A DNA stretch of 64,000 nucleotides from Caecitellus pseudoparvulus (GCA_965644315.1 CBFFRQ010000064.1:248001-312000); one strand, 5' to 3'; counted from the stretch's first letter, positions 3,887 through 63,143 are shown. A program made the numbers and translations. Notes: generated by a model not told the origin, from the letters alone.

Positions 3887-5881
3887 ATGGCGGACCCGGC
3901 CACACATAGCCTTTCCCCAGTATGCCAGCGAAATGTGACTCTGGACCCGCCCAACCCACATGCCGCCCCGCCAGTCCAAGACCCCCATGGAGCTGCTGTC
4001 CGAAGCCCAAGCGACCCACCTGCGGATAGTTCCACGGAGGGGCCTGGTGGTGAGGATGTCTCTGCGGCCACGCCAACATCCACCACAGAGCCCCGTGCCA
4101 GTGGCTCGGCATCACCTCTGGCCGCTCCAGGTCTGGAAGAATCACCCCCAACGGAGCAGGTGGCAGGTGGGGCAGCTTCAACGCCGCCAGAAACACCCAC
4201 TCCACCTTCACTTATTCCTGCTGACAGCCAAGCCCCTAGACCTGCCTCCCCCATCTCTGCAGCTGCTGACAAACCATGCGCAGTCCATGAAACGGGCGGT
4301 GAAACGCCAGCTCACACTGGCTCCAGCAGCACAGCTCCAGTGGCGCAACTGGCCGCAAAAAGTGAAACAACATCGACCAATGGTGGTGATTTGGCTGGCC
4401 ATCATCCCCTCGCACCTGTCCAAAGTAAAGTACCCCCCAGTGATTCTGCATGCCTTCCTGCTCCGGCTCCAGCTCCAGTCAAGACTTCTGCCTCGTCTTT
4501 CTTTGCGGCAGAGCCGGATAGTGCTGCCAGTCTTCCCTGCGTATCCAGCGATCCATTCTCTCAAAGACCTGCTTCTGCAGCAGCTGCATTCTCCTCGCTT
4601 CCATTGCCTGCAGGCGGGCAGAGAAGCCGACAGGACATTGCAGCCATTACGCACACCAGCGCCCAAGCGCATGCAGCACGCCACGAAGCAGTGGTAGCTG
4701 CCACGCCAGCACCGAGCCTGTTGCATACAAGTCCCTTTCCTGCACATGAAGCACAGCCCACGCCAACGCCAGTTCCGGCGACTAGCAGGTCTTCCAGCTG
4801 GTTCAGCCAAGCACCAACCTTGCACGAGGCGAAACGCAGCGTTGCTTCCACTTCGCATGCGCCGAGCGGCGCCTCGGCTGCTGCTATTTTCGGCGTAACT
4901 CCTAGCGCTCCAGTTTCCCACACACCGGCCCCCGTCCCCCTCGATAGACGGACCTCTGCTCCCCCAGCCCCAGCCGCGACAACGTGGCAAACCTCTGCAC
5001 CCTCTGCCCCAGCTCCTGCAGCCTGGCAAACCTCGCCTCCCCCTGCACCTGCCCCTGCAACGTGGCAATCCTCTGCCCCAGCTTCACTCACCAAAGCCCA
5101 AGAAAACCCCGTAGTGCCAGCCCAGGTGCCTCACGGATCTGGGTCTTCGCTTGTAGGCCCAGACAGCAGCATTGGCTTTGACCCACTCGCCTACCGACAA
5201 CAGCTTGCGAGTGCACCCGCTCCACAGGCAGCAACTGCTTCCACAGTCTCCAGTTCAGGGCCACCATCTAGGCGAAGGACTTCAGCACTAGCGAAGCGAA
5301 AAGCTGCGGCTGCTGCCGCACAGGTTGAGATTTTGAGGCGTGAAGCGGCTGCTGCGAGAGAGCGTGAAGCGGCTGCCGCCAGAGAGCGCGAAGCGGCTGC
5401 CGCCAGAGAGCGCGAAGCGGCTGCTGCGAGAGAGCGCGAAGCGGCTGCTGCGAGAGAGCGCGAAGCGGCTGCCGCCAGAGAGCGCGAAGCGGCTGCTGCG
5501 AGAGAGCGCGAAGCGGCTGCTGCGAGAGAGCGCGAAGCGGCTGCCGCCAGAGAGCGCGAAGCGGCTGCTGCGAGAGAGCGCGAAGCGGCACAGGCATCTT
5601 CTGTCTCGCAGGGCTTCAGCACGTTCAACCCTGCTCCTGCTCCTGCTCCTGCTCCATTGTCTGCAGGGGGTGTGTCGAGTCAGGGCTTCAGCACGTTCAA
5701 CCCTGCACCTGCACCTGCACCTGCTCCTGCTCCATTGTCTGCAGGGGGTGTGTCGAGTCAGGGCTTCAGCACGTTCAACCCTGCACCTGCTCCTGCTCCT
5801 GCTCCATTGTCTGCAGGGGGTGCGTCGAGTCAGGGCTTCAGCACGTTCAACCCTGCACCTGCACCTGCACCTGCACCTGCA

Positions 5882-5913
<32 letters not shown>

Positions 5914-8809
5914 ATTGTCTGCAGGGGGTGCGTCGAGTCAGGGCTTCAGCACGTTCAACCCTGCGTTGGCAGGCAGAACGGCGTGGACTGAGGCTCAGGC
6001 GCCTCAACAGCCTCGAGTGGCTGTGCAACCAGGACAGTACCCCACCCATCCAACGTCGCGTGCAGTGATTGCCTTTGGGTTTGGTGGTCGCGTAGCAACT
6101 ATATTCCCGCCCTCTGCTGCGCCCAAACAGCTGACATATGATGCACCCATGCAGGGAACGGTACTGCGAACTTGGCGCACAGCAGAGTTGATGGGGTCAC
6201 ACCCAGTTGTGCAGGCTGTGAAGGCTTGGCCGGGCCCCGTCGGCAGCCACCCTGGAGCCCCCGCTGCCAACAAAGTTCGAGAACACATTAACAGTGATGT
6301 GACCTTGCACGGGCTAGCCGCTGCTGAGGCACGAGATTTGGGTTTGGACGGATGCTGTGGGGGAAGGCTGGCACCAGCTCGCCTGCTGACAGCACCACAT
6401 GCCCTGAGCGTGGAGATGCGGCGTGTGCGGTGTGAAAGTATCTCCCTATGGAAGGTGTTGGCGCTCATGCTGCAGCGCAAAGGCCCTTTACTAGAGGGGG
6501 CGGACCCTCCGCGCCGGGGCGCTGCTGCAGAGGCCGTGGCTGAGTTCAGCCACAGCACAGGCGAGCTGGATTACTCCGCAGGTGGGGCGGCAGAGGATGC
6601 TGAGCCTGCTGTGGGTCTTGGGGCGGATCCGAGTGCCTTGCCCCAGCTTGGTGCTTCCCTCGCCAGCGCCGGCGTGGAAGCTACGATTGAGACTGCAGCG
6701 GAGACGGGGCAGTGGACACATGCCCTGCTCTTGTCGCAGGGTCTCGGGCCAGCTGCCTTCAAACGCACTCTCTCGCGCTTCCTTGGCACCATGCCTTCTC
6801 ACAGCCCTCTTTCTTCCCTGTACCATGTGCAAGCGGGTCAGGCTGTGAAGTTGATTGGGGGCGACCAGTCCAACCCGGTGTTCAAAGCGGGCTTCCTGTC
6901 CAATTGGCGTCAGCACGCTGCCACGTTGATCCGTACGTTTGGGGCTGAGAAGGGGGTCCCACACCTCCTTGTGGCGCTGGGCGACGTGCTGTGGCGCACC
7001 TGTGGCTCCACACCCGCGGCCCACATGCTGTACCTGCTCGCAGGGGGAACACCCAGCCGTGAGCCACAGCTGAAGCACTGTGGTCCACACAGCACCCCCT
7101 CTTGCATGCCTCGGGGAACACAGTGGGAGGCAGAGTACGGAAGCAGCAGCCGCATGGTGCTAGTAGGCGGCAACCACCGTGGCTTCGGCACTGCGTTCCG
7201 GGGTGACACCATCTCCCTGTGGCGGACGGAGGTGTGGGAGTTTGCGGCAGGGCGAGGCAAGCCAACACCAGCGTCCCCGGCCCTGGCGCCGTATAAGCTG
7301 ATGCACGCGCTGTGGTTGACAGACTTGGGCATGCTGGGCAAGGCGTCTGACTACCTCGCTGCTCTTGAGCACACGGTGAGGTCCTGTGGCGCTAGTCTCC
7401 CCACTGCCTCGCCGCCCACAGCAGGCACGGCAGGGCCCTTTCACCCTGCCTTCTTGACGTCGTTGGCACTGCTTCGGCATCGCTTGACTCAGGCTGGGGG
7501 TGGACAGCGCTTCGGCGTAGGGTTGGGACAGACTGGAGCGGCAGGTGGCGCTGGAGAGGGTGCTGCATCACGGGCAGGCACTTCCTGGTTGGGCGGACTG
7601 CTCGGTGGCTGGTCCAAATCTGCACCAGCGCCTGCTCCGGAGCCAGCCCCAGTGCCGGCGCCCCCGGCGTCGGCGGCGCCCCAGCCAGCACCTGCACCAC
7701 ACACCTCGCAGCCAGGAACTGCGCCTGCACCTGCTCCGGAGGCAGCGCCGAAGCCTAGTGGTGCAGGCAGCAAGTCAGTGTTGTCCGGTTGGCTGCCCAG
7801 CCTGCAGGGTATCTTTGTGCGAAAGGGCGTGACAGTTGCCAAGGGTTTCAATCCCAATGCGGCCCCCAGTGCCGAGCCAGTGTGGGATGAAGCCAAGGGC
7901 AGGCTGGTGTTCCCTGGTGATGACAGCGAGGATGAAGTGGCGGAAGGGCCCCCTCCCATGGCCATGGCCCCTGCGCCAGCTCCTGCTACGGACGGGCAGG
8001 GTACAGGGCCTGGCCCGGGACCTCCTGCTCCCGGCGTGCCTGCAGCGGGGCCTGTCGCGTTTGGCGGCTCCCTCATGCGACGAAAGAAGAAGCAGGCGCC
8101 CGCTGCAGCCGCCACCCCCGCTATGCCCACCGGAGCGCCCTTTGGGGCGCCCAACGCAGCCGCTGGAACCTCCACTCCGCCTGCGGGCGCAGCGGCACAG
8201 CCACCTCGAGCGACCACCACAGCGGCACGACCGCGGGCTGAAGCCAAGCGACCCAAGTGGGGTGCCGCACGGAAACAGGGTGGGGCGCGCAAGGGCCGCA
8301 AAGAGCGCCTGGGGCAGGCAGCAGCCGCCCGCAATGCTGCGGCCCTGGCAGGGCACAGCACCCCCTCCCAGCCTGCGCCTGCTGAGGCCTCTTCCTCTGC
8401 CAAAGTACAGGAGGATGCTGGCGAGCCAGCTGCCCCGCCTCCCGCCCCAGCTGCTGTGCCGACATCCAGCGGAGGCGGACAGTGGTCACAGTGGGCCCCG
8501 CCACCTGGGGCATCCCCAGCACCCGCGTCAGGAGACGTGGATGAGTGGCGGGCGCAGTTTGCTGCTGTGAGCTCTTCCCTCGCGGCACAGACAGCCGAGC
8601 CTGAGCCAGCGGTGGGCGGGGCCGGGCCGTCGACGACAGATGCCCGAAGTGGCGGTGCAAGCGCGGGTGGCGCGGGAATCGCACCCAGCACACAGGCACC
8701 AGTGCACGCTGGCCCCCCCTCCAGCACTCAGCCAGTCTTCGCGAACATGGCGGGGGCAGCACATGCGCTGCACACGCCTGGGCACGGGGAGCCCCACATC
8801 GGCCTGTGA
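3887..8809 (+). CDS. SEC16: COPII scaffold Sec16
   Basis: Central conserved domain: [77 protein letters not shown]-terminal [10 protein letters not shown] motif; low-complexity flanks. Start at 3887 (MADPATH) is inferred. Confidence 0.85.
5341..5580 (+). repeat. Coding tandem repeat, 24 bp x10 (EAAAARER), in Sec16
   Basis: Unit (c/t)gaagcggctgc(t/c)gc(g/c)agagagcg repeated 10 times, in two synonymous variants. Confidence 0.95.
5606..5964 (+). repeat. Coding repeat: [10 protein letters not shown] x5 with variable (PA)n-LSAGG spacers, in Sec16
   Basis: cagggcttcagcacgttcaaccctgc occurs 5 times, separated by (cctgca/cctgct)n tracts of different length. Confidence 0.95.
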
Positions 8810-24530: not shown

Positions 24531-27500
24531 CTACAGCAGGGCCACGGTCCCCTGTGCGGGCGCTGGGGCGGGCGCAGTTCGTTTCTTGCGTGGCTTGCGG
24601 CGGCGCACGACGGGCACGCCGTAGGCAGCAGCGGCCCGCTGCAAAGAGACGGCTGAGGCGGAGGGTGTGTGTGTGTCTGGGTCCCCCTCCGCCTCGAAGC
24701 CACGCGGCACAGGGCGCCGAGTGTGGATGTTCACCCGTGTGCCACTGGGTGCCTGGGTGGGGGAGGTCGAGAAGGCGGGGCGGTGTCCCCCCCCCCCCGC
24801 TCCGCCGGCAAGGGGGGACAGGCCGACACCGCCCACGCCCAAGCCGCCACCCCCCGCCAGGGCGTTGCGCAGTGCTGCACGGGCCTCGGCTCCTGAGCCT
24901 GCAACGGCGGGCGAGGGGGGTCCGGACCCCCCTCGCCCCGCTTCCTCTCGCAGCATGGCGGCAAACATGTCTTTCGGCACAAGGGGTGGCCCACCCCCCC
25001 TCAGGGCTTCCCGCTGTTTCCGCAGGCGATCAGCATGAGCCCGCGCAGCGGCTTCTGCCCGGGCCACGACCTCAGACGCGACTTCTGATCGCGCAGGGGA
25101 GGCGGACTGCTCCCGGCGTCCACCCTCCTGCCGCGCCGACTCACTGCCCTGGGGGTGGGCCCACCCCCAGCCTCCCCCGCTCCTTGCGCCATGCGCACTG
25201 GTGGCAGAGCCCCGCCCAGCTTGGGCAGGGTCCCCCCCTCCCAGCCGGTGCCTGCTGCCTGGGGCAGGGGGTGACGCGCTGCCTCGAAGGTGACTCGATG
25301 AGGTGGGCCCACCCAAGCGCCCCGGTGGCGTGACACTCCCACCCATGGCACTGCCCCCGCCACTGGCTGGCGTGGAGGAGGGGGGGGAGCTGGCCCGCTG
25401 AGGGGGGGGCGGACCCTCCCCCGCCCCACCTCCCAGCCGAGGCAGGCGCAGAGGTGACACCGTGCGCCCAGGCGCCACTGGCACCGGCGCCGCCACCGGC
25501 GCCGCAGCTGGTGCCCCGCTCAGCATGCGTTCAAAGTACGCCGCCCGCGCAGCCCGTGCTGCGCTCGGCGACACGGGCGCTGCGAACGCCTGCACGGCGC
25601 CCCCCCCCCCGAGCCTGTCCCCAGCTGGGGAGAGGAGGGGGGATACGGACACACGTTCCGGGGGAGGGGGGGTGGTTGCCCGGCCTCGGCCCTCTTCCTT
25701 GCTCTCCCGTAATACGGCGTCCCGGCGCGTCGCTGCCTGGCTACTCGCCTGCACATCCGCCCTGGCAGCTGCCCGGATGCTTGCCCCTGAGTGTGGCCGA
25801 GCGGACAGCGCACCCTCGCCCATGGGGGGGGCGGAGGCCGCAGTGGCTGCGGCAGCGGCGGGTGGGGCGGCACCCCCTTGTGCTGACGCAGGGCGGGGGG
25901 GGCGGGGGGGTGCCGCCTCCGCCTCCACCGCCTTCTTCACAGTCTTCTTGCTGGTCTTCTTGGCACCCCCCTTCTTGGAGCCTCCCTTCTTCGTACCAGA
26001 CTTGCTGGCGGGAGCTGCGGCGGCGGGCACGCCACTCTCGCTGCGCTGCCCAGCCTTGGCCCTCGCTGCCAGCCGTTGAAAGACGCTTCCGCCATCTGAG
26101 GTCGTGCGTTGGACGGGCGCTGGAGCTGGGGCAGGTGCCGCACCCCCCCTTGACCTGCCAGCGCTTGTGGGCGTGGACCCTGCCGAGCGAGGAGCTCGAC
26201 TGCGAGCTCGGGCCTTGGACTTGCCACGAGCCTTCTTGGCGGGGGCAGGGGCGTATGCCGACCCCGCCGCAGCAGCGCCTGAGGCCCCACCCCCGCCCAG
26301 GCGAGGGGACGCCGCGGAGGAGGAGGGGGAGGGCGCCCCACTGCCGTCCTTGTGCTGGCCCGCCATGAGGCGCTCCATGATGGCACCCTGCGTCTTGACG
26401 CGGTTTCCACGCCCCCACCGCTTGGACTGCTCACGCTCCAGCACTCGGCGAGCCACCTTGGCGTCCGCCTTGGCCACCCACGTGTTCAGCAGCTCCTTCA
26501 CCTCCTTGTTCCCAGACTTGTTCGCCATGAACAGCACGTCCGTGCCGTACTTTGTCTTCTGCCGCAGCTCGTGCACCTTGGCGTACTTGAGCAGGGCGCG
26601 GATGACGCCCAGCCGCCCCCGCTCCACAGCCACGTACAGCACGCTCTTGCCACGCTTGGTGCAGTGGGTGTGGTCGGCGCCCGCTGCCATGAGCAGCGTG
26701 ACACTGTCCAGCCGCCCAGCCTCCGCAGACACGAACAAGGGCGTGTACCCTGACTCGTCGATGATGTCCACTTCCACTTCCGTGCGACCTGGGATCGCGC
26801 CCCGCCCCGTCGCCACCCGACTCGTCGCAAGCATCGCGTCCACCGCCTGGGCCAGAGCCTGCTGGGTGTGGCGCCAGGGGGGGATGGGCCCACTGTGGCA
26901 GGGGGTGGGCCCACCCTCCCCCGCCTCCTCTTCCTCCGCGCCCTCCTCCTCGCCACCTTCACCTCCCTCCCCCTTGATCATGGCCATGATGCCTTGATAG
27001 CGAGGGCGGGACCGTGCCGCAGCAGCTGCAGCAGCTGCCGCCATGGCAGCTTCCTCCGCTTCACGCGTGGTGGTGGTGGCCGTCGTGACGATGGGCGCTG
27101 GCGCCTCCGTCGCGCCCTGCCCGAAGCACCCCCCAATGCCCTTGTGGCGGGGGTTGGGCGCGCCCCAGATGGACGTCGGCACCGGCGCCAGCGCATCCCG
27201 CACACGCATGGCAGCGGCACCGGCGCCAGCCGCGCCCAAATTCGCCCCACCTGAGCCCCCCCCCGACGCCTTGCTCTCCCCCGCCCCGCCACGCCCACCG
27301 CCCTCGCTCTCGCTCTCGCTGCCCTCACCATCACCCCCCGCCCCACCCCCCCCCTCCCGACGCGCCTTCCACTGTGCCCACAGCTCCATGCGCTTGGCAC
27401 GGATGTCCTCAATGGTGGCGTCCACACGCTCAGCACGTGGGACGGGCAGGGCGGCCCGCAGCAGCAGGCGCACTATGTGCTCCTGCCCACACCGTGCCGC

Positions 27501-40854: not shown

Positions 40855-43800
40855 TCATTCTTCTTGGGAAGGGACCCCACCTGCAGCGGCAGCTGGGCAT
40901 GGCGCCAGGGCACAGGCAAGCAGTGCGACGTGCACAAGCAGCACGTACACGAGCAAGACGGCAGCTGGGCTCTGCATCAGTGCCGCTGGGGCTTTCTTGG
41001 CTCGTACTACAAGCTGCTGCCCTTGTGCAATCAGGCGCCGCCAGTCCAACAGCGGGGAGCGGCGCAGGTCATCGTCTGGGTCTTGGTGGGGCGTGCTAGA
41101 CGCAGCTGCAGAGTCCGTTGCATGCCTGCTGGGCCCTGTTGCTGTGCTGGCCCTCAGCAAGGGGGCTGTCGCACTCGCGTTCAGGTCCGGCTCGCCGCTG
41201 TCAAAGTCCTGGCTGACATCCGCCAACTCAGGTGCCACCTGCCGAGGCGCCAGCAGATCAGTGATGTCAGCCACCACATCTCCGTTTGTGTGCGCCAAGT
41301 GTGACTGCACGCCGAGGAGCGCCTCTCTCAGCGCTGCCGTGAAACGCTTGTCCAGCGTGCGGGCATGGCGCACCAGGCCTGGTAGTAAGCCCTCACTCGC
41401 AGCACTCACAGCGCTGGCCTTTGTCTGAGCCTCAAGCTTTGTCTGCAATTCAGCCATTCGCTCGGCGAGCTCCTCCAGCTCGGCTTGCTTGGCTTGCACT
41501 TGCATCCGCAACCCCTGCTCAGCTGCAGATGGTCCATCGCTTGGTTGCGCTTTGGCCTGCTGTGACTGCAGCTGGGATTGTGCGGCCGCCAACTCGGCTT
41601 GCACACCGGACAGCGCATCATCGACCGCAGCTTTTGCGGCAAGGGCTTCCTCTCGAGCAGATGTCGCCTCTGCAAGCTGACTCTCCAATTCCTGGGCAGC
41701 CTTCTGTGCTGAGGATGCCTGTGCTTTGGCTTGGGCCAGCTCGGCGGCCATGTCTGGGGCGGGTGCGGCATCCACGTCCGCTTCCGAGTCACGCGAGCGC
41801 TGCAGCGCTTCTTGCAGCTCTTCAATCTGCGCTTCAAGCGATGCAGCCTTGCGCTTGGCTTGGGCTTGCACCTTCTTGAACTGCCCCATGCGAACTGCTT
41901 CCTTTTCGCGTGCAGCATCCAGAGCACTCTGAGCAGCCTCCAAAGCAGCTTCAGCCTGTACCGCTCGTTGAGTGTCAGACGAAGCCCCAGACTTGGCTGC
42001 ATCCAAATCCGCTGCAGCCGCAGCTAGCTTCTGCTCGAGGTCGCTGTTGACTTGCTTGAGGCGAGTCAGCTGCGCATTTGCATCCTCTGCAGCAGCCGAC
42101 TTTGCCTGGAGCGCCTCGTTTGCCGTAACAAGCTCCTTGCGCAAGCTGGCAAGGTCTGCTTGCATCTTTTCCTGGGCTGCTTCCTGCTGTGCCTGCAGCG
42201 ATGCGAGTTCAGCCTCCCGGGCCTGCACTCCGTCCAGCCGGCTCATGTGGTGCTCCACCTGCCCTCGTGCCTCTTGCAGATCAGAAGACAGGTCTGCAAT
42301 GGTTCCCTGTGCAGAACGCAGGTCCTCATTTGCTTGCTCCAGCGAGGCTCGGTCTGCAGCGTGATCATGTGTGGCAGCAGCAAGCTCTTGCTCAAGCCGC
42401 TGTACTTCTGACTTGAGGCTTTCCGCTTCACTCTCAAGGTCTTCTTGTCGCTTCAAACTCGCCTCTACCCTCGCATTGGCTTTCTGCAGCCTCAGTGTTG
42501 CCGAATCAAGTTGCTGTCGCAGCGCATGAGCGGTCTGCTGCTCAGAAGAAATTTGGGATTGTGCCGCCTCCAGCTCACCCCGCAGTGCCGCAATGGTGCC
42601 ACGCGCCTCCTCCAGCTCCTGCCCCGCGCTGCCAGCCGCCTCCAGCTCACCCCGCAGTGCCGCAATGGTGCCACGCGCCTCCTCCAGCTCCTGCCCCGCG
42701 CTGCCAGCCGCCTCCAGCTCACCCCGCAGTGCCGCAATGGTGCCACGCGCCTCCTCCAGCTCCTGCCCCGCGCTGCCAGCCGCCTCCAGCTCACCCCGCA
42801 GTGCCGCAATGGTGCCACGCGCCTCCTCCAGCTCCTGCCCCGCGCTGCCAGCCGCCTCCAGCTCACCCCGCAGTGCCGCAATGGTGCCACGCGCCTCCTC
42901 CAGCTCCTGCCCCGCGCTGCCAGCCGCCTCCAGCTCAGGTGCCGATTCAGAGGCATCGCATGATTTTGCTTGTGCCAGTTGAGCTCGCAAGGAAGCTAGT
43001 TCGTCCGCATATGCCTGTTTGGCGCTTTGCAGCGCATCAGCTGCCTTGACTGTTTCTTCTTCTTGCAACATCTCCATGCGCATGAGGGCTTCTTGAGTGC
43101 TCTTGAGCTCAGCCTCCGCATCAGATGCTCGCTTTGCCGACTTCTCCAGCTCTGACCGCAAGTCTGCTAGTTCAGCGGCATGAGTGTGGGATTTCTCTTC
43201 TGCCTCATGCAGAGCAGCAGCGCTGGACACCGCCTCGTCACGGGCTGCAGTCAGGCCGGCCACCTCCTCACGCAAAGCAGCAGCGCTGGACACCGCCTCA
43301 TCACGGGCTGCAGTCAGGCCGGCCACCTCCTCACGCAGAGCAGCAGCGCTGGACACCGCCTCGTCACGGGCTGCAGTCAGGCCGGCCACCTCCTCACGCA
43401 GAGCAGCAGCGCTGGACACCGCCTCGTCACGGGCTGCAGTCAGGCCGGCCACCTCCTCACGCAGGGCGCTCACGTCTTCACCAGGGACAAATTCTGCATC
43501 ATCACGCTTTTCGGCACGTCGCAAAGCCTGGTCTTTCTCGTCTATCTCCCGTCGCAGCACCGAAGCTGCTGAGTGGGCCACAGCAAGCTGCTTCTCAAGA
43601 GATGTGCAGCGAGCCTGGGTGTCTGAGAGAGTTGCTTGGAGTTGCTCGCGATCTTCAGACTGCACAGGCGTGGCAGCGGCAGCTTTGAGCTGCTCCTCCA
43701 GCGCTGCAATGTGTGTGGCGCTCTCCTCTCGCAGTGTGGCGAGCTGCGCGCGCAAAGCATGCACCTCGTGCTGTGCGCTGCGGCCCCCGCCCCCTACGAA

Positions 43801-54808: not shown

Positions 54809-57800
54809 ATGGCGCTGTGCTGCCACACGCTGCGCAGCAAGCTGCTGGGCAAGATCGGGGCTTCTCTCCTTGCCGGGGCTGTCATCGCCATCGTGCTGGT
54901 CAGCGTCCTGCTGTCTCAGTCGCTGCCGGAGTGGACTGATTCCACCCGCGACGCAGTGCGTGACCCTGCCATGGAAATGGTGCATGAGCCGCGATGCACC
55001 TGGTCGCACCCGTGGCACGCAGATGATTTCGGCTGAAGAGGCAAACCTTGTGCGCTTGACTGGGGAAAAGTCCTCGTTTAGCGGTGTGTGGGGGCGTTGC
55101 CGGGAGGATGCGTGCAAGTGCACTGCACCTTGCCCTCGCTTCCTTTCGGCGCCCCACAGACATCTTCTTCAGTCGCATCAAGGGCGACTTGGAGCTGCTG
55201 TGCCATGTAACACAAGAAGCTGGTTCGGGAGCCATTCCTGGCACTGTCGCCAACACGTACGGGGTGGTGGAGACGAACCCTCCCTCCTCCGTGCCTGGCT
55301 GGAGCAGCACAGCACGTGCGAGCTTCCAAGAGTCAGGGTGGTGGCAGTGCACAGCTGCCTCTGGCCCACCCGCTGCGGCGTGTGACAACCCAACTGACAC
55401 TCGGCCAGGCGTACGTGAGGCAGAGCTGACCCCTGCTGGCGACGCCAACGTGCGACAAGGGTACCTGCCTGAGCCTCACTTGCGTGGCATGCACGCAGCC
55501 CAGGTTCCCCTGGGCCGGGGAGGTTTTTGGGGTGTCGCCTTTGAAGACAACGGCGTGCTGGTGGAGTACCCTTTCCAGTCCTTCCGGGACTTCGGCACGG
55601 GGGCGTACGACTGCCCCTTCCCGGGGTACTCTGGGCCTCGGGGCGAGAAGCGAGGCTACGACCCGCGCTGCCGCCCTTGGTACCTCGGCGCACGCAGCCA
55701 GCAGGGGGCGTTTTTCACAGCCCCCTACTTGTTCGCAGGCACGACTGACCTGGGCATCACGGCAGCCCTGTCCTTCTTCAACACCACGGAGTACCCCGCC
55801 CCCACCCGCAGCACTCCGCTGGACGGCGTCTGCATGCTGGACTTCGCCTTCACAGAGGTGACGGAGAGCGTGCAGCAGAAGATCCTGAGCAGCGGGTATG
55901 GCTACATCATCAACGCAGAGGGCGACGCGGTGGCCCACCCCTCCCTCAGCTACACCTCCCCCCCCGCGGATCCCTCCATTCTCGCCTTCGAATTCGGCTC
56001 CACATCCTCCCCTGAAGCGCAGGCCTTCGCTGCGGGGCCCCTCGCGTCCATGAGGGCCATGGAGCAGGGCTCCGCAGCGTACAGCAAGGACGGCGCAGAG
56101 TGGATCGTCGCCTGGGGCAACGTCAGCTCTGCCGGGTACAGCATTGCCCTCACCGTGCCCCAGAGCGAGGTGGAGGAGCCGTTCGCCCAGGCCAAGCGCG
56201 AGATCGACGCCTTCATCGGGGGCATGACGGGCATCATTATCGCCACACTGTGCGTCCTCTTCCTCATCCTCGTCTACGCTGGCAGTCGTGTGGTGCAGTC
56301 CATCGTGACGCCAGTCCAGCGACTGAATGACGTCGTGCAGAGCATCCTGGACAAGGACTTCGACGGCGGCTTCCCTCTGGAGCAAGGGGAGATGAAGACC
56401 CAGGAGCTGGCCTTGCTTGCAGAGGTGTTCCGCCAGATGTACACGGTGGTAAAGGTGGGGCACGCCAGCCTGCTGGGTGGCGACTTGGAGGAGGCCCAGC
56501 AGGTGTACGGCGAAGCGCTGGAGCTGTTCACGCGCATGGGCCACGCCAAGGGCATGGGCGTTTGCTACACAAACCTAGGCGCGGCAGCGCTCTTGACGGG
56601 CCAGCACGGGGAGGCCATTGGCTTCTTCACCAACGCCGTGCAGAACGCCGAGCAGCTGCTGCAGGCACACGAGGCAGTGCTGCTAGCACGGCGGCAAGCG
56701 GAAGGCAGTGCTGCGCCCGTCCCCCAGGCCACCAGTGCGGCAACCGGCGCGGAGGCAGTGCCCCCCCCACCGTCACAACACCACGGCGGACAGGGCCAGG
56801 AGTTTGAGGAGGTGTCCTTGGATGGCCCTGGCGCTGCAGCTCCGGCCATCGAGTTGACTGCGATCCGTGTGCCCCCGCTGGCGCCCCTGGCACAGTCCAT
56901 GGCTGCAGCAGCGGGCACAGGCGGCATTACCCCCGCTGGCAAGGGGGATGAGAAGCACGCCAAGCTGCTGCAGCAGCTGGCCTCTCGGCAGCAAAACCTG
57001 GCCAAGGCGTACCTGGCCCGGGCCCATGTCATCACTGACTCGCAGCTGACGATGGAGCTGGGACAGGAGGTGCCTGACAGCTTGTCTGCGGCGCGGGCTG
57101 CCCTGGGCCCCCACGCCACGCACGAGACGGCGGTGGCAGACACACTGTGTGCGCTGGATGTGCTGGATGCAGCGGGGCAGAACTACGCTGCGGCCATGGC
57201 GGCACTGCCACCTGCCCAGGAGGCCATGGTGCATGCAGAGGCCGCACAGGCGTTCAGCCAGGCAGCCCTGGCGTGCGCCACCTTCCCGCAGTGCGCACAG
57301 CGTGCGCGGCAGCTGGCACACAGCGCTCGGGCGGCACAAAGCCTGTTCATGGCCCTGTACCGCTCCCCCGGGTTCCAGTCCACGCCGTCCCTGGACATCC
57401 TGGCTGTGCAGGTGGAGAGTCGGGTCCTGACAGCTGACGCGGCGGCAGCGGCGGCAGAGGGCAATGCTTCCGGGGCCCTGCAGGGCATGTCGGCAGCCCA
57501 GGTCACCGGCAGTGTGGGGGACCCGGCCTTTGATGCGCGTGTCGCGTGGGCCATGGCCCAGCTGCTGCACACACTTGGCCAAGGCGAGGCGGCCAAGGCC
57601 ACCCTGGCCTCTGGCGTGGGTGGCGTCCGCAAGGAGATGGACCTCATGTTTGTGCTGGACTACAGCGGCAGCATGAGCGGCGGCCTCATCCGCGCCGCCG
57701 TCTCCAACATGCTCATGCTGTACGACAACTACACGCAGGCACGGGACCGCGTGGGCCTCATCCTCTTCGGCCGCCACGCAGAGATCCACACAGAGCTGCA

Positions 57801-58227
57801 GGTGCGAGGCACGGGCAGCACCGCCGCAGACCTGCGCGCACGCCTCGCCTCTGTCACGCACCCGCGAGGAACCACGGCGTGCTACGATGCCCTGCACCTC
57901 GCGCTGGACATGTTCAAGCGCACGGAGGGCGCTGGCGCAAGCGCAGGACGCACGCAGACCATTGTCGCACTGACTGACGGGGAAGACAACAGCTCTGACT
58001 TGACGCCACGTGAAGTGCAGCGGGAGCTGGCAGAGCAGTGGGCAGGCCCGACGCAGTTGGTCATGGTGGGCGTTGGGCGCCTGCGCACAGCGGACACACT
58101 CAAGGACCTCTGCGCGGCATCTCAGGGTGGGCTGTATGTGGAGGCGGAAGGGGGAGCCTCCAGTCTGGACGCAGCCTTCACGGCTGTCGCGCAGGCCATC
58201 GCGGATGTGACTGTGGAGAGCTTGTGA
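54809..58227 (+). CDS. Receptor A: TM - dCache_1 (amino-acid-binding motif) - TM - HAMP - TPR - vWA; 3 exons
   Basis: TM1 LLAGAVIAIVLVSVLL; YDPRCRPWY (55657-55683), TAPYLFA, GVCMLD, GYGYIINAEGDAVAHP; TM2 GIIIATLCVLFLILVYA; HAMP IVTPVQRL...ELALLAEVFRQM; TPR GVCYTNLGAA; vWA MFVLDYSGSM, GTTACYDA, IVALTDGED. Confidence 0.85.
56942..57023 (+). repeat. 82-bp perfect inverted repeat, copy 1 (coding GDEKHAKLLQQLASRQQNLAKAYLARA)
   Basis: agggggatgagaag...cctggcccgggc is the exact reverse complement of 61057-61138. Confidence 0.93.
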
Positions 58228-58355
58228 TGCGAGCCCTGTGGCGACTCTGCAGTCTGCCGTATATCGGGTGGCCGCCTTCCCACCTCCCGCACAATTCAAA
58301 ACCCCACCCAACCACGCAGCTGTATGCCGGTGTCCTCACCAGCTGCACGCTTGTC

Positions 58356-59742
58356 ATGGCCATGGCCAGCACTGGAAGCGCCCTGGAGGGGGGCGAGCCA
58401 GAGTTTCACAAGCCCTGCTACACCTGCCAGGTGCGCTTCCCATCCACGGAGGTGTTGACAGCGCACTTCGGGACGCAGTGGCACCAGTACAATGTGAAAC
58501 GTGCCTCTGCGGAGCTCCTACCTGTGACGCTGGAGACGTTTGAGAAGCGCAAAGCCGCTGCCCTGGCGAGGAAGCAGGCTGAGGCAGAGGCAGCGAGACC
58601 ACGCAAGTTTAAGTGCACGCTGACTGGGAAGGTTTTTGGGAGCATGGGCGCCTTGCGCAGCCACTACACCTCCAAGAAAACCAGGACAGCCATCAAGGCC
58701 AAGGTGAAGGCGGGGAAGTTGGCGGAGAACCCCTTGGCAGGCGTTGACGTTTCTGCGTGGACCCAAGACCAACTTCCGCACTTTGTCACGACCATCTTCC
58801 TGGACGAAGAGCCGGCTGGCGGGCAAGCGGCCGAGGAAGAGGCTGTGCCTGACACCAAGTTCACACGCATGGCACAGGAGTCCACCATTCATGACCTCTG
58901 CTTCCTGGACCTGCAGCCAGTGGAGAGTTTGACCAAGTGAGTGGCAACGCGGCTGGTGGCACCTTGTTCTGGCTGTGACGCGGTGTGCCGCGTGGCACGG
59001 CACGAGCTGCACGCGCTGCTGCCCCCCGCTTCCCAGGAACCTGGAGCGCCTCGTGACTGTGCACGGCTTAGTCATCCCTGACATCGCTTACTTGAAGGAC
59101 TTGCCGGGTCTGCTCGCACATTGCCACGACAAGGTGCTGAAGGGGCAGACGTGCATTTACTGCAACACAGGCTTTTCGTCGGTGGCAGCCACCGTGCAGC
59201 ACATGGCAGACAAAGGCCACGCCCGCCTGCCGTTTGACATTGACGGGGGCAAGGCCATGGCCGAGTACGAGGGCTTCTGGGACTACGACAAGGACGTGGA
59301 GCACTTCAACTCCAAGGGCGAGCGCGTCGTGCCCATGACGCACGCGGACCGAGAGTATGACGCCTTCGGCAACCTGCTCCTGCGCGATGGCGGCAGCCTG
59401 GGCCACAGGGAGTACCAGAAGTACTATGTGCAAGACCTGCACGAGAAGCGTGAGTCCTCTGCCCTGGCGGCGGTCAGGGCGGAAGGCACCACCCGCTTGA
59501 TCAAGCACCACTTCGGAAAGGAAGTCGCTGGTGCACTGGTGGTGGCTGGCGGGGCCTCGAAGGCCCTCAGCACTCACGTGGAGGCCACAGCCTTCCGCGC
59601 CAAGACGGAGGCTGAGAAGGCAGCTGAGCGAGGGCGCACACTGGCTCGTCGGCAGCAGGCCCATGACGAGACTGCCGTCAAGACCAACAAGGTCCGCAAC
59701 AAGAACGTGTATTTCGTCCAGCAGTACATGGGCGCAGGGTAA
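58356..59742 (+). CDS. REI1: Pre-60S maturation factor REI1/ZNF622; 2 exons
   Basis: CYTCQVRF...HFGTQWHQYNVKR...LLPVTLETF, HGLVIPDIAYLKDLPGLL, CIYCN...HMADKGH and LGHREYQKYY. Confidence 0.9.
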
Positions 59743-59780
59743 GCCCCCGCCCTCCCCCAATGCAGCCCGATGCCCCTTCC

Positions 59781-62700
59781 TTACACCGCTTCCAGGGTGA
59801 CATCAGCAGCTGCCATGGAGACACAATTAAAGGCCAGGTCCACTTCATCTCGGGGGGACACCCCATGCTGCAGCAGGCGGCCGCCACTGCTGGCGTCCAC
59901 CATGCGTCGCAGGGTGCGCCGCGAACCAGCCAGCTGCCCGACCAGCACAATGTGCAGAGTGATGTCCAACGCCCCACCCGCCAGCTTCATGGGGGGGTCT
60001 GGGTTGCCCTGCAACAACTTCACCACGTCATTGGCACTGTGCTTGGAGGCGGTGTCCCGCCCGTCTGTGAAGGCCACAATGGTGCGGTGCGCCGAGAAAC
60101 CTCCTCGAGTGCCGGGGATGTGTGCTGCTGCCTGTTCGTGCAGCAGCTGGATGGCAGACACCAAGGCATCGTACAACGCCGAACTTCCCTTGGGGGAGCG
60201 GAAGGAGTCGATGATGGCGCGCACCTTGCCAGCGGCACGCCCTTCGCCCTTGACGCACGGCTCGAAACGCAGAACTGGCCGGCGGGCAAAGGTGATGAAG
60301 CCAACCCGGTCAATGGGCAGCACATACCGCTCAAACATCTCCAGCAAGGCATCCATGGCAGTGGGCCCCGTCTCCGCCTTGCCCATGCTGCCACTGTAGT
60401 CGAGGAGGAAGAGGAAGTCTCCTGCTCCGTTGGTGTGCGCGCCAGCCGACGCAGCCACCGCCCGCGCGGCCTCAAGCTGCCCTTCCTGCAGCAACAGCGA
60501 CGCCATCAGCCACTTGACTCGGTAGTCCACGTAGGGCGAGCAGACAGACCCTGTCGTCAGCGCACTGGCCAGCTTCTGCAGCGCCGAATTCGTGTGGCCC
60601 TGCGTGGCAAGGGAGGCACCTTGAGCTGCCAGCACTCGGCGATGCAGGCGCACGCTCAAATGCGCATACTCCTGTGTCATGACGAAGTGTGCTTCTGTCG
60701 TTGCAGCCTCGAAGCACTCAAAGCTGTCTTGCGTTGCTTGGGCGAGAGACGCCACCCGCCTGGAGAATTGCGGGTGCTGCGCCACAGCCAACGCGGCATC
60801 TGAGTACATCTCCGTCACACATGCTTGGGCATCAGCCACGTGCTGAGAAGATGTAAGGGCCGGGATCGCCGCTGTCAAGTGCTTGCCAGCGGACTCCAGC
60901 AGGTTCAGCGCCCGTTTGCAGTCCGAGGCGCTGGCTTCCAGAGGGTCTTGCTCGGACACCAGCGTGCCTGAAGAACTGACACTGAGTGTGCCGCTTGGCC
61001 TGGCTTCCACATACCCGCCCAGTTGCTTGACAAGGGTGGCGTCCAGCACCCGCCGCGCCCGGGCCAGGTACGCCTTGGCCAGGTTTTGCTGCCGAGAGGC
61101 CAGCTGCTGCAGCAGCTTGGCGTGCTTCTCATCCCCCTGCTGGGCTGTGATGGGTGCGATGGCTTGGCGTTCCGTGGCGGAGCTCATGGAGGTGGAGCTC
61201 CGAAGGAACTTGGCAGCAGCGGTGGCAGCGGCGGTGGTGGTGGCCAACTGCCCGCTCGTCAGCTGGCTGCCAGGGGTGTCTTCCGCGGGAGGGTACACCG
61301 TCGGAGCAACGACGCCCGTCTGACCAGGCGGGGGGGGCACCAGTGTGCCTTCGTCTGGATCTGGGGAAGACACCTCACCTAGGTGCACCTCAATCAGGTA
61401 CTCACTATTGCGCACGGCCAGCCTGTAGTTCGTGATGGCGCTGCGGTAGTCCTGTTCGTGCATGAAAGCTGCGCCAAGGTTTGTGTAGCAGACGCCGATG
61501 GCATACTGATGCTGCAAGCGTGTGAACAGCTCCAATGCTTCCCGCAGCATGGCTTTGGCGAACTGCATGTCGCCAGCCAGTAGGTTGGAGTTGCTGACGC
61601 GAATAACCATGAACAGCTGGCGCAGAAGCTGGGCCAGGACAGTCACTTCCCGTGTACTGTGCTGCGAGCCGGATTTGAGCAGGGGAGAGTTGGTGCGCAG
61701 GCGCCCTGCTTCGATGTCAGCGGCGAGTTTGCGCAACTCTTGCACTGGGCCCACTACAGACGCGATGAGGCGTGAAGCCGCAGCCACGACGCAGAGCAGG
61801 ACTAGGAGCAAGGTGAATGTTACCACCAGCACCAGGCTCGAGACAAAGGTGGTGATGAGGGCCTCTGTGGTCTTGAAGCTGGCTTCCACGTCCGCGGCGG
61901 GCACTGTGACTGACACGCTGTACTGCGCCACGCTCACGTTGCCCCACGAGATGAACCAACGCTCGCCCCCTTTGAAGTACTGCGCCCGCCCTCTGGAAAG
62001 GCTCTGCAGTCCAGGCAAGACGTCCCGTGCGAACGCGCGGCGCTCGCCCTCCGAGGCATCTGCCAAGTCCACTTGCAAGATGGACGTGTTCGGGGGAGGG
62101 TCAGCCAAGTCCACTTCCGGGTGGGCCACGATATTCCCCTGCGTGTCAGTGATCCACCCATACCCACCCGTGCCCACACGGCTCTTCACGCTGGCAGACA
62201 CTGTCGTGAAGTCGATGTCCATGAAACACACGCCCTCCCGAGTGGACGCCGTAGTGTGGGGAGGGGGCTCTGCCGTGGTGTTGAAGAAAGACAGGGCTGC
62301 CGTAATCCCTAAGTTTTGACTGCCCGCAAAAATGTATGGTGATGAGAATTCTGGCTCTGTGCTGAGCCTGGCCGTGGTGTACCAGGGGCGGCAGCGCGGG
62401 TCGTAGCCCACCTTCGGCAGGCTGCCCGTGTAGCCCGGGAAGGAGCAGGAGATCTCCAGGGTGCGGTACCTCTCCCGCGGCCGGAAGGGGTACATGCTGA
62501 ACGTGCCATCCCCCTCGAATCCCATCCCCCACAGCCCGCCAGAGCCAATGCGCATGTCCCCACTGGCCAGCGCTTTCATGTGTGGCTGTGCCAGGAAACC
62601 AGCATCCACGTGCAGCCCATTCGGCGTCGACAGTTGCGATGAGCTGACGCCAAGGCCCCCGTTATCACAGCTGGATCCAGGTGGGGCCTGTGCGCCGTTG

Positions 62701-63143
62701 CACAGCCACCAGCCCGAGGTGCCGTATGCGCCACTGGCGTCAGCGTCCCACCCAGGCTGCGACTCTGCGTCGTCGAACGCGCCGTTCGGCTGGTGGGACA
62801 CCCCGCCTGGGAGCTGGTCGGAAGCAGCTCGGGAGCCAATGGAGCACATTTGTTTCACAGCAGCATTCACGCGTTTGAAGAATTGGTCTGTGGCGCGGTA
62901 GCAGCAAGGTGGTGGGCAAGGCTGGCGTCGCAAGCGACGGGTCGCCAACACCTTACCTGCGAACTCTGTCTTCAGGGCCGTCAGGCGGTCTAAGTTCACG
63001 AGCTCAGACTGCACCATGTTTGCCCGGGTGGGGTCCGTCCAGCCACTTTGCAGGAGCAGCGTCGCAACCAGGACGACAGCCAGCACCAGGCCTGGGACGA
63101 TGCCCATTGTTGCCATGAGCAACTTGGTGTGCAGTTTTCCCAT
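59781..63143 (-). CDS. Receptor B: TM - dCache_1 - TM - HAMP - TPR - vWA, paralog of 54809-58227; in-frame intron 62956-62888
   Basis: YDPRCRPWY (62405-62379), SSPYIFA, GVCFMD, GYGWITDTQGNIVAHP, TM2, HAMP VVGPVQEL...EVTVLAQLLRQL, GVCYTNLGAA, FLLDYSGSM and IVAFTDGRD. The intron lies at the same position and phase as intron 2 of receptor A. Confidence 0.85.
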   Translation of the reverse strand: MGKLHTKLLMATMGIVPGLVLAVVLVATLLLQSGWTDPTRANMVQSELVNLDRLTALKTEFAGKVLATRRLRRQPCPPPCCYRATDQFFKRVNAAVKQMCSIGSRAASDQLPGGVSHQPNGAFDDAESQPGWDADASGAYGTSGWWLCNGAQAPPGSSCDNGGLGVSSSQLSTPNGLHVDAGFLAQPHMKALASGDMRIGSGGLWGMGFEGDGTFSMYPFRPRERYRTLEISCSFPGYTGSLPKVGYDPRCRPWYTTARLSTEPEFSSPYIFAGSQNLGITAALSFFNTTAEPPPHTTASTREGVCFMDIDFTTVSASVKSRVGTGGYGWITDTQGNIVAHPEVDLADPPPNTSILQVDLADASEGERRAFARDVLPGLQSLSRGRAQYFKGGERWFISWGNVSVAQYSVSVTVPAADVEASFKTTEALITTFVSSLVLVVTFTLLLVLLCVVAAASRLIASVVGPVQELRKLAADIEAGRLRTNSPLLKSGSQHSTREVTVLAQLLRQLFMVIRVSNSNLLAGDMQFAKAMLREALELFTRLQHQYAIGVCYTNLGAAFMHEQDYRSAITNYRLAVRNSEYLIEVHLGEVSSPDPDEGTLVPPPPGQTGVVAPTVYPPAEDTPGSQLTSGQLATTTAAATAAAKFLRSSTSMSSATERQAIAPITAQQGDEKHAKLLQQLASRQQNLAKAYLARARRVLDATLVKQLGGYVEARPSGTLSVSSSGTLVSEQDPLEASASDCKRALNLLESAGKHLTAAIPALTSSQHVADAQACVTEMYSDAALAVAQHPQFSRRVASLAQATQDSFECFEAATTEAHFVMTQEYAHLSVRLHRRVLAAQGASLATQGHTNSALQKLASALTTGSVCSPYVDYRVKWLMASLLLQEGQLEAARAVAASAGAHTNGAGDFLFLLDYSGSMGKAETGPTAMDALLEMFERYVLPIDRVGFITFARRPVLRFEPCVKGEGRAAGKVRAIIDSFRSPKGSSALYDALVSAIQLLHEQAAAHIPGTRGGFSAHRTIVAFTDGRDTASKHSANDVVKLLQGNPDPPMKLAGGALDITLHIVLVGQLAGSRRTLRRMVDASSGGRLLQHGVSPRDEVDLAFNCVSMAAADVTLEAV
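61057..61138 (-). repeat. 82-bp perfect inverted repeat, copy 2
   Basis: Identical on the minus strand to 56942-57023, in the same reading frame of the paralog. Confidence 0.93.

Follow-up and report, generated by a model that had tools for sequence, protein, structure and literature searches.

Among inversion systems that swap protein modules, the shufflon of plasmid R64 is a known system comparable to the locus described here. In the spnIII (cod/ivr) hsdS locus of Streptococcus pneumoniae, an in-frame inverted repeat of similar size (85 nt, against 82 nt here) supports about 1-10% inversion without a local recombinase or RecA (PMC6620402). In spnIII and the shufflon, the repeat lies between two variable protein halves, clones contain a mixture of orientations, the one expressed gene draws on silent cassettes, and the locus itself includes a recombinase. 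In Caenorhabditis, surviving conversion tracts between paralogs cluster at 50-200 nt in either orientation, and pairs such as fog-2/ftr-1 and the inverted hsp70 genes carry tracts of tens of nucleotides with unexchanged flanks and population-level variants (PMC3966223). For mammals, the minimal homologies quoted for efficient recombination exceed 200 bp (PMC3966225). The receptor genes A and B described here resemble the Caenorhabditis pairs in being neighbours, in their short tracts, which occur in either orientation there, in the unexchanged flanks and in the population-level variants, but the distance between the partners is unusual here (36% protein identity, silent sites saturated), and one tract lies over a ligand-binding motif. 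They share with spnIII and the shufflon an in-frame inverted repeat between two protein halves; unlike in those systems, both genes are intact, a single orientation was observed and a search for such a recombinase gave no match.

The locus lies in a 64,000-nt stretch of Caecitellus pseudoparvulus DNA, which was analysed as a whole (hereafter the window). The 30.6-Mb genome is that of a compact, intron-bearing eukaryote, and its tandem 18S genes are assembled. A second small-subunit rRNA match at G000:C213:27842-29337 is weaker and not as long, and may be of organellar or bacterial origin. Exact tandem arrays, with 72-nt and 63-nt units and mixed 24/72-nt units, occupy positions 42563-42937, 43209-43464 and 5366-5964 of the window. 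The features discussed below are as follows.

54809..58227, plus strand: gene A, encoding a dCache_1 sensor, a membrane helix, a short HAMP-like part, a TPR-like helical solenoid with a disordered insert, and a vWA domain
54956-55022 and 55084-55159, plus strand: introns of gene A, inferred from GT..AG and the register with B
55654..55683, plus strand: second tract in A, 29/30 nt common with B, covering the YxxxxRxWY motif
55759..55789, plus strand: third tract in A, 30/31 nt common with B, inside a 13-residue identical run
56942..57023, plus strand: 82-nt tract, gene A copy, invariant in every haplotype seen, probable donor
58356..59742, plus strand: REI1-like zinc-finger gene (PF12756) between A and B
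58937-59036, plus strand: intron of the REI1-like gene, spliced in run X11 (joint 58936 to 59037, GT..AG)
59781..63143, minus strand: gene B, architecture as gene A, with an inferred intron at 62956-62888
61057..61138, minus strand: 82-nt tract, gene B copy, probable recipient, polymorphic in the species
62273..62303, minus strand: third tract in B, partner of 55759..55789
62379..62408, minus strand: second tract in B, encoding the A-type motif peptide

The dCache_1 Pfam scores of A and B fell below the curated cut-off. The amino-acid-binding motif of dCache_1AA sensors, as described for PctA, alpha2delta and CACHD1, consists of YxxxxRxWY followed by a Tyr and an Asp 27-34 residues apart (PMC8915833). 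Both A and B contain YxxxxRxWY with the downstream Tyr and Asp, the spacer between the latter being 37-38 residues, slightly above the published range. By this motif A and B are candidate dCache_1AA sensors, and amino-acid binding is predicted for both. Their vWA domain is C-terminal, beyond the membrane helix and after the TPR-like solenoid, whereas in all eukaryotic dCache_1AA members it is reported to be inserted in the dCache domain (PMC8915833). In an AlphaFold model, whose mean pLDDT was 61 and whose sensor part is unreliable, the 82-nt block is predicted to form the first helix (residues 597-632, pLDDT ~88) after a disordered insert (513-588), and to lie within one helix run from 414 to 821, i.e. 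away from a domain border. The insert before the block is ~400 residues long in the B orthologs (L012:5800-6900, L013, L014) and ~80 in A and B of the window, and the disordered linker of A carries a 6-nt in-frame insertion polymorphism at 56823 (runs X1 and X10; L016). A word search found only seven homologs of receptors with the dCache-TM-TPR-vWA order, none of them with a tested function. The nearest named homolog is the transcriptome entry GECG01, which we take to be from Halocafeteria seosinensis and which would suit a marine stramenopile of the bicosoecid type.

The arms at 56942-57023 and 61057-61138 are 100% complementary over 82 nt and 4033 nt apart, and they represent the sole exact inverted repeat of at least 20 nt between two places in the window. 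As the sequence-only reading had claimed, the arms are exact reverse complements standing in the same codon phase of both genes, where they encode an identical 27-residue peptide. A genome-wide search, which that reading had proposed, found two copies of the 82-mer only, and a genome search for further close paralogs of A and B found none, open frames and last exons having been used as queries with the spliced models left unjoined. At degenerate residues shared by A and B, all 26 complete codons inside the block are identical, against 169 of 351 (48%) outside it; identity at 26/26 would arise by chance with a probability of ~1e-9. In 2000 codon resamplings, the longest run shared by A and B was 44 nt, versus the 82 nt observed. 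Silent sites between A and B are saturated, because cross-species paralog pairs also show a silent identity of 42-49%. The block contains a 16-nt perfect palindrome (56963..56978, also 61102-61117), and just two other palindromes of at least 16 nt are present in the window. It could possibly seed breaks as a hairpin trigger, yet it arises from Leu-Leu-Gln-Gln-Leu codons and is also explained by them. Perfect palindromes of 30 nt (24909-24938) and 22 nt (25149-25170) lie in a GC-rich region of the window.

In addition to the 82-nt block, two shorter tracts in the sensor domain are nearly identical between A and B. One covers the ligand motif, whose first position is Phe in B orthologs, where B of the window has the Tyr of the A-type peptide. 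The other falls in a run of 13 residues that is identical in A and B and absent from both ortholog groups. Codon resampling under a constant protein alignment gave 31 as its best run in 0.5% of cases and a second-best run of at least 30 in 0/3000, and in A/B pairs of relatives the best near-identical runs were only 14-18 nt. The earlier statement that the other conserved blocks are diverged at silent sites does not apply to these two, which are near-identical as DNA. A genome-wide four-taxon count outside the block gave species-type sites of 10/7, 14/10 and 7/9, i.e. no excess, suggesting that conversion is limited to a few patches.

Separate trees of the halves on either side of the block, another check proposed from the sequence, placed A-N and A-C with the A orthologs and B-N and B-C with the B orthologs, the B clade having a support of 100/100 in both trees. 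A past fixed swap of halves was ruled out by this concordance, since each half groups with its own orthologs. The block itself groups by species and the flanks by paralog: it is 100% identical between A and B but 74-81% identical to any ortholog. In three relatives, the A and B blocks share 54-58/81 nt, and the longest exact run anywhere is 13 nt. The relatives also differ in gene order. In L012, L013 and L014 (also in L015 and L020), B is forward, REI1 reverse, A forward and KRR1 forward, and L021 has A forward followed by KRR1 forward, whereas the window read likewise has B forward, REI1 reverse, A reverse and KRR1 forward. Gene A here thus faces B and stands head to head with KRR1, while in relatives its head-to-head neighbour is REI1 and it lies in tandem with B, so gene A as a whole is flipped in place between the lineages, the breakpoints lying between genes. 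A JGI metagenome scan yielded L020 alone, which nearly duplicates L014; as that scan gave no sister species at an intermediate distance, the tracts are undatable between species.

Within the species, four other assemblies (L016-L019) are 98.5-99.4% identical to the window at the locus. L016 (GCA_905221625.1) is labelled Symbiodinium sp. KB8 and probably represents a co-sequenced organism, and L017-L019 are three metagenomes, seemingly from one study and so not fully independent. In L016, whose locus is ~99% identical and is probably DNA of a co-cultured flagellate, protein P0010 corresponds to gene B and is named pctA. Copy A is identical in all four, and the positions that separate copy B from it number 1, 2, 2 and 0 (80-82/82). 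In run X1, the 82-mer forms its own contig at a depth of 124, against 73-80 (~76) for single-copy flanks, and two junction contigs at depth 50 link it to the B flanks. A second B allele with three differences has a depth of 42; two of these are at 61071 and 61092, and the third is probably 61115. We read X1 as a heterozygote with one B allele equal to A and one variant. The variants of copy B in the species are silent at 61071, 61086 and 61092 and change Leu to Met at 61115. All four are private to B and derived relative to the orthologs, with none in copy A, and four versus zero is suggestive but not significant alone. The read evidence consists of Logan contigs, built from 31-letter words, in which an identical allele is unphaseable and rare variants are dropped. 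Run X11 is listed as DNA. The REI1 intron appears spliced in it, which indicates cDNA, and one of its contigs joins REI1 and B (window 58352-62039), suggesting that the 3' ends of the facing transcripts overlap.

The shared tracts are best explained by repeated interlocus gene conversion in short tracts, the two ancient paralogs lying 4-7 kb from each other; we assign this a probability of about 0.8. One gene, on suffering a break or a stalled fork, would be repaired off the other at the most similar stretches, 30-82 nt being copied by non-crossover repair that leaves the flanks unexchanged, and at least three such events would have occurred in this lineage. The 82-nt tract could have survived because any A and B have 74-81% identity in this helix to begin with, which would make the swap nearly neutral. 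Consistent with conversion, silent identity in the block stands far above that of the flanks, copying was non-reciprocal, and Rad51-family genes are present in the genome. The option of a recent conversion tract, one of two offered by the sequence-only reading, is thus supported by silent identity, the half-trees and the two further tracts. On the scale of paralog divergence the 82-nt tract is young, as no fixed difference separates the copies, and the B alleles have mutated since; the B allele that equals A may be the original one or the product of renewed conversion. Its direction was probably from A to B, which is favoured because three of the four diagnostic block residues are A-type and because of the motif tract; the fourth is B-type, and no unconverted B allele was found in the assemblies and runs. 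One of the sensor-domain tracts apparently gave B the A-type ligand motif. Several points count against conversion: donor and recipient differ far more than is usual for it, the mammalian minimal homologies exceed 200 bp, the donor is not clean in view of the B-type residue, and the four variants in 82 nt of B are slightly more than the local 1.6% would give (P ~0.04).

The flip of gene A offers another origin for the tracts, as scars of foldback or template-switch events enabled by, or made during, that lineage-specific rearrangement; in its strong form, an inversion at the block was later reversed. The tracts are indeed confined to the lineage that has the facing arrangement, and the 16-nt palindrome sits in the block. 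However, the flip breakpoints lie in the intergenic regions flanking A and not in the tracts, and the halves are not swapped. The tandem relatives may moreover form one clade, in which case flip and tracts represent a single contrast that could be read in either polarity. We consider this origin unlikely.

A live, reversible inversion, with flipping of the 4-kb segment at the 82-nt repeats frequent enough to yield cells of both chimeric pairings (sensor A to output B, sensor B to output A), is given little credence. The same holds for the version in which a minority of cells invert the segment by general recombination and a eukaryote retains the working chimeric receptors as a standing switch. 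The geometry fits, and the prediction from the sequence that a crossover in the repeat yields two in-frame chimeras is correct, as the reading frames of the two products stay open for 1045 and 1012 codons, counted from the last-exon starts. Open chimeric frames are no sign of design, however, because conversion between aligned paralogs always leaves an in-frame tract. The length of 82 nt is not prohibitive in a bacterium, since the spnIII repeat inverts without a local enzyme. Against inversion, the window and the four other assemblies are all collinear in the native orientation, so the comparison of strains proposed earlier yielded one orientation in five assemblies. The three-variant B allele of X1 is a single contig that reaches into both B flanks, B-C and B-N, and no joint changing strand was seen in four runs. 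Of the chimeric transcripts that had been proposed for a search, X11 gave no sign of the B-N/A-C form: one cDNA contig passes the B block natively without a branch, and the A flank that such a chimera requires has no coverage. Frequent crossover should also carry B variants into A, where none was seen, although this is suggestive only. The earlier observation that no recombinase is visible in the window extends to the genome, in which tyrosine and serine recombinases (PF00589, PF00239) had no match. The relatives have the genes in tandem, so that a crossover would delete REI1, and lack a common block, and in the model the junction is predicted to fall inside one helical solenoid and not at a domain border. 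The shufflon-like switch, the other option of the earlier reading, is thus unsupported. Room for rare inversion is kept in the fully identical allele, which is unphaseable in these contigs.

Selection holding the helix (e.g. as an A/B heterodimer interface) or the DNA (as a shared motif) identical, with no copying, is highly improbable. No other segment of the A and B proteins is in fact as well conserved as the block, but protein-level selection cannot fix 26 silent sites, B tolerates silent variants and one replacement in the block, and relatives have different DNA there. As the sole cause, selection was ruled out by the silent-site identity, but it may have helped the converted allele to spread. 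An assembly or polishing artefact, which perfect identity alone might suggest and which had been raised as a caveat, is refuted with near certainty by the depths of the 82-mer contig and its B-flank junctions in X1 and by the four other assemblies.

The 82-nt repeat is, by accident, a substrate for module-swapping inversion. A live inversion would amount to a eukaryotic receptor switch of the shufflon kind and be very surprising, and no evidence here shows one. Read as recurrent gene conversion, the A/B pair provides a clean natural case of conversion over 30-82 nt between saturated paralogs, in which population variants bracket the age of the tract. Moreover, the acquisition of the A-type ligand motif by B could have altered what B senses.
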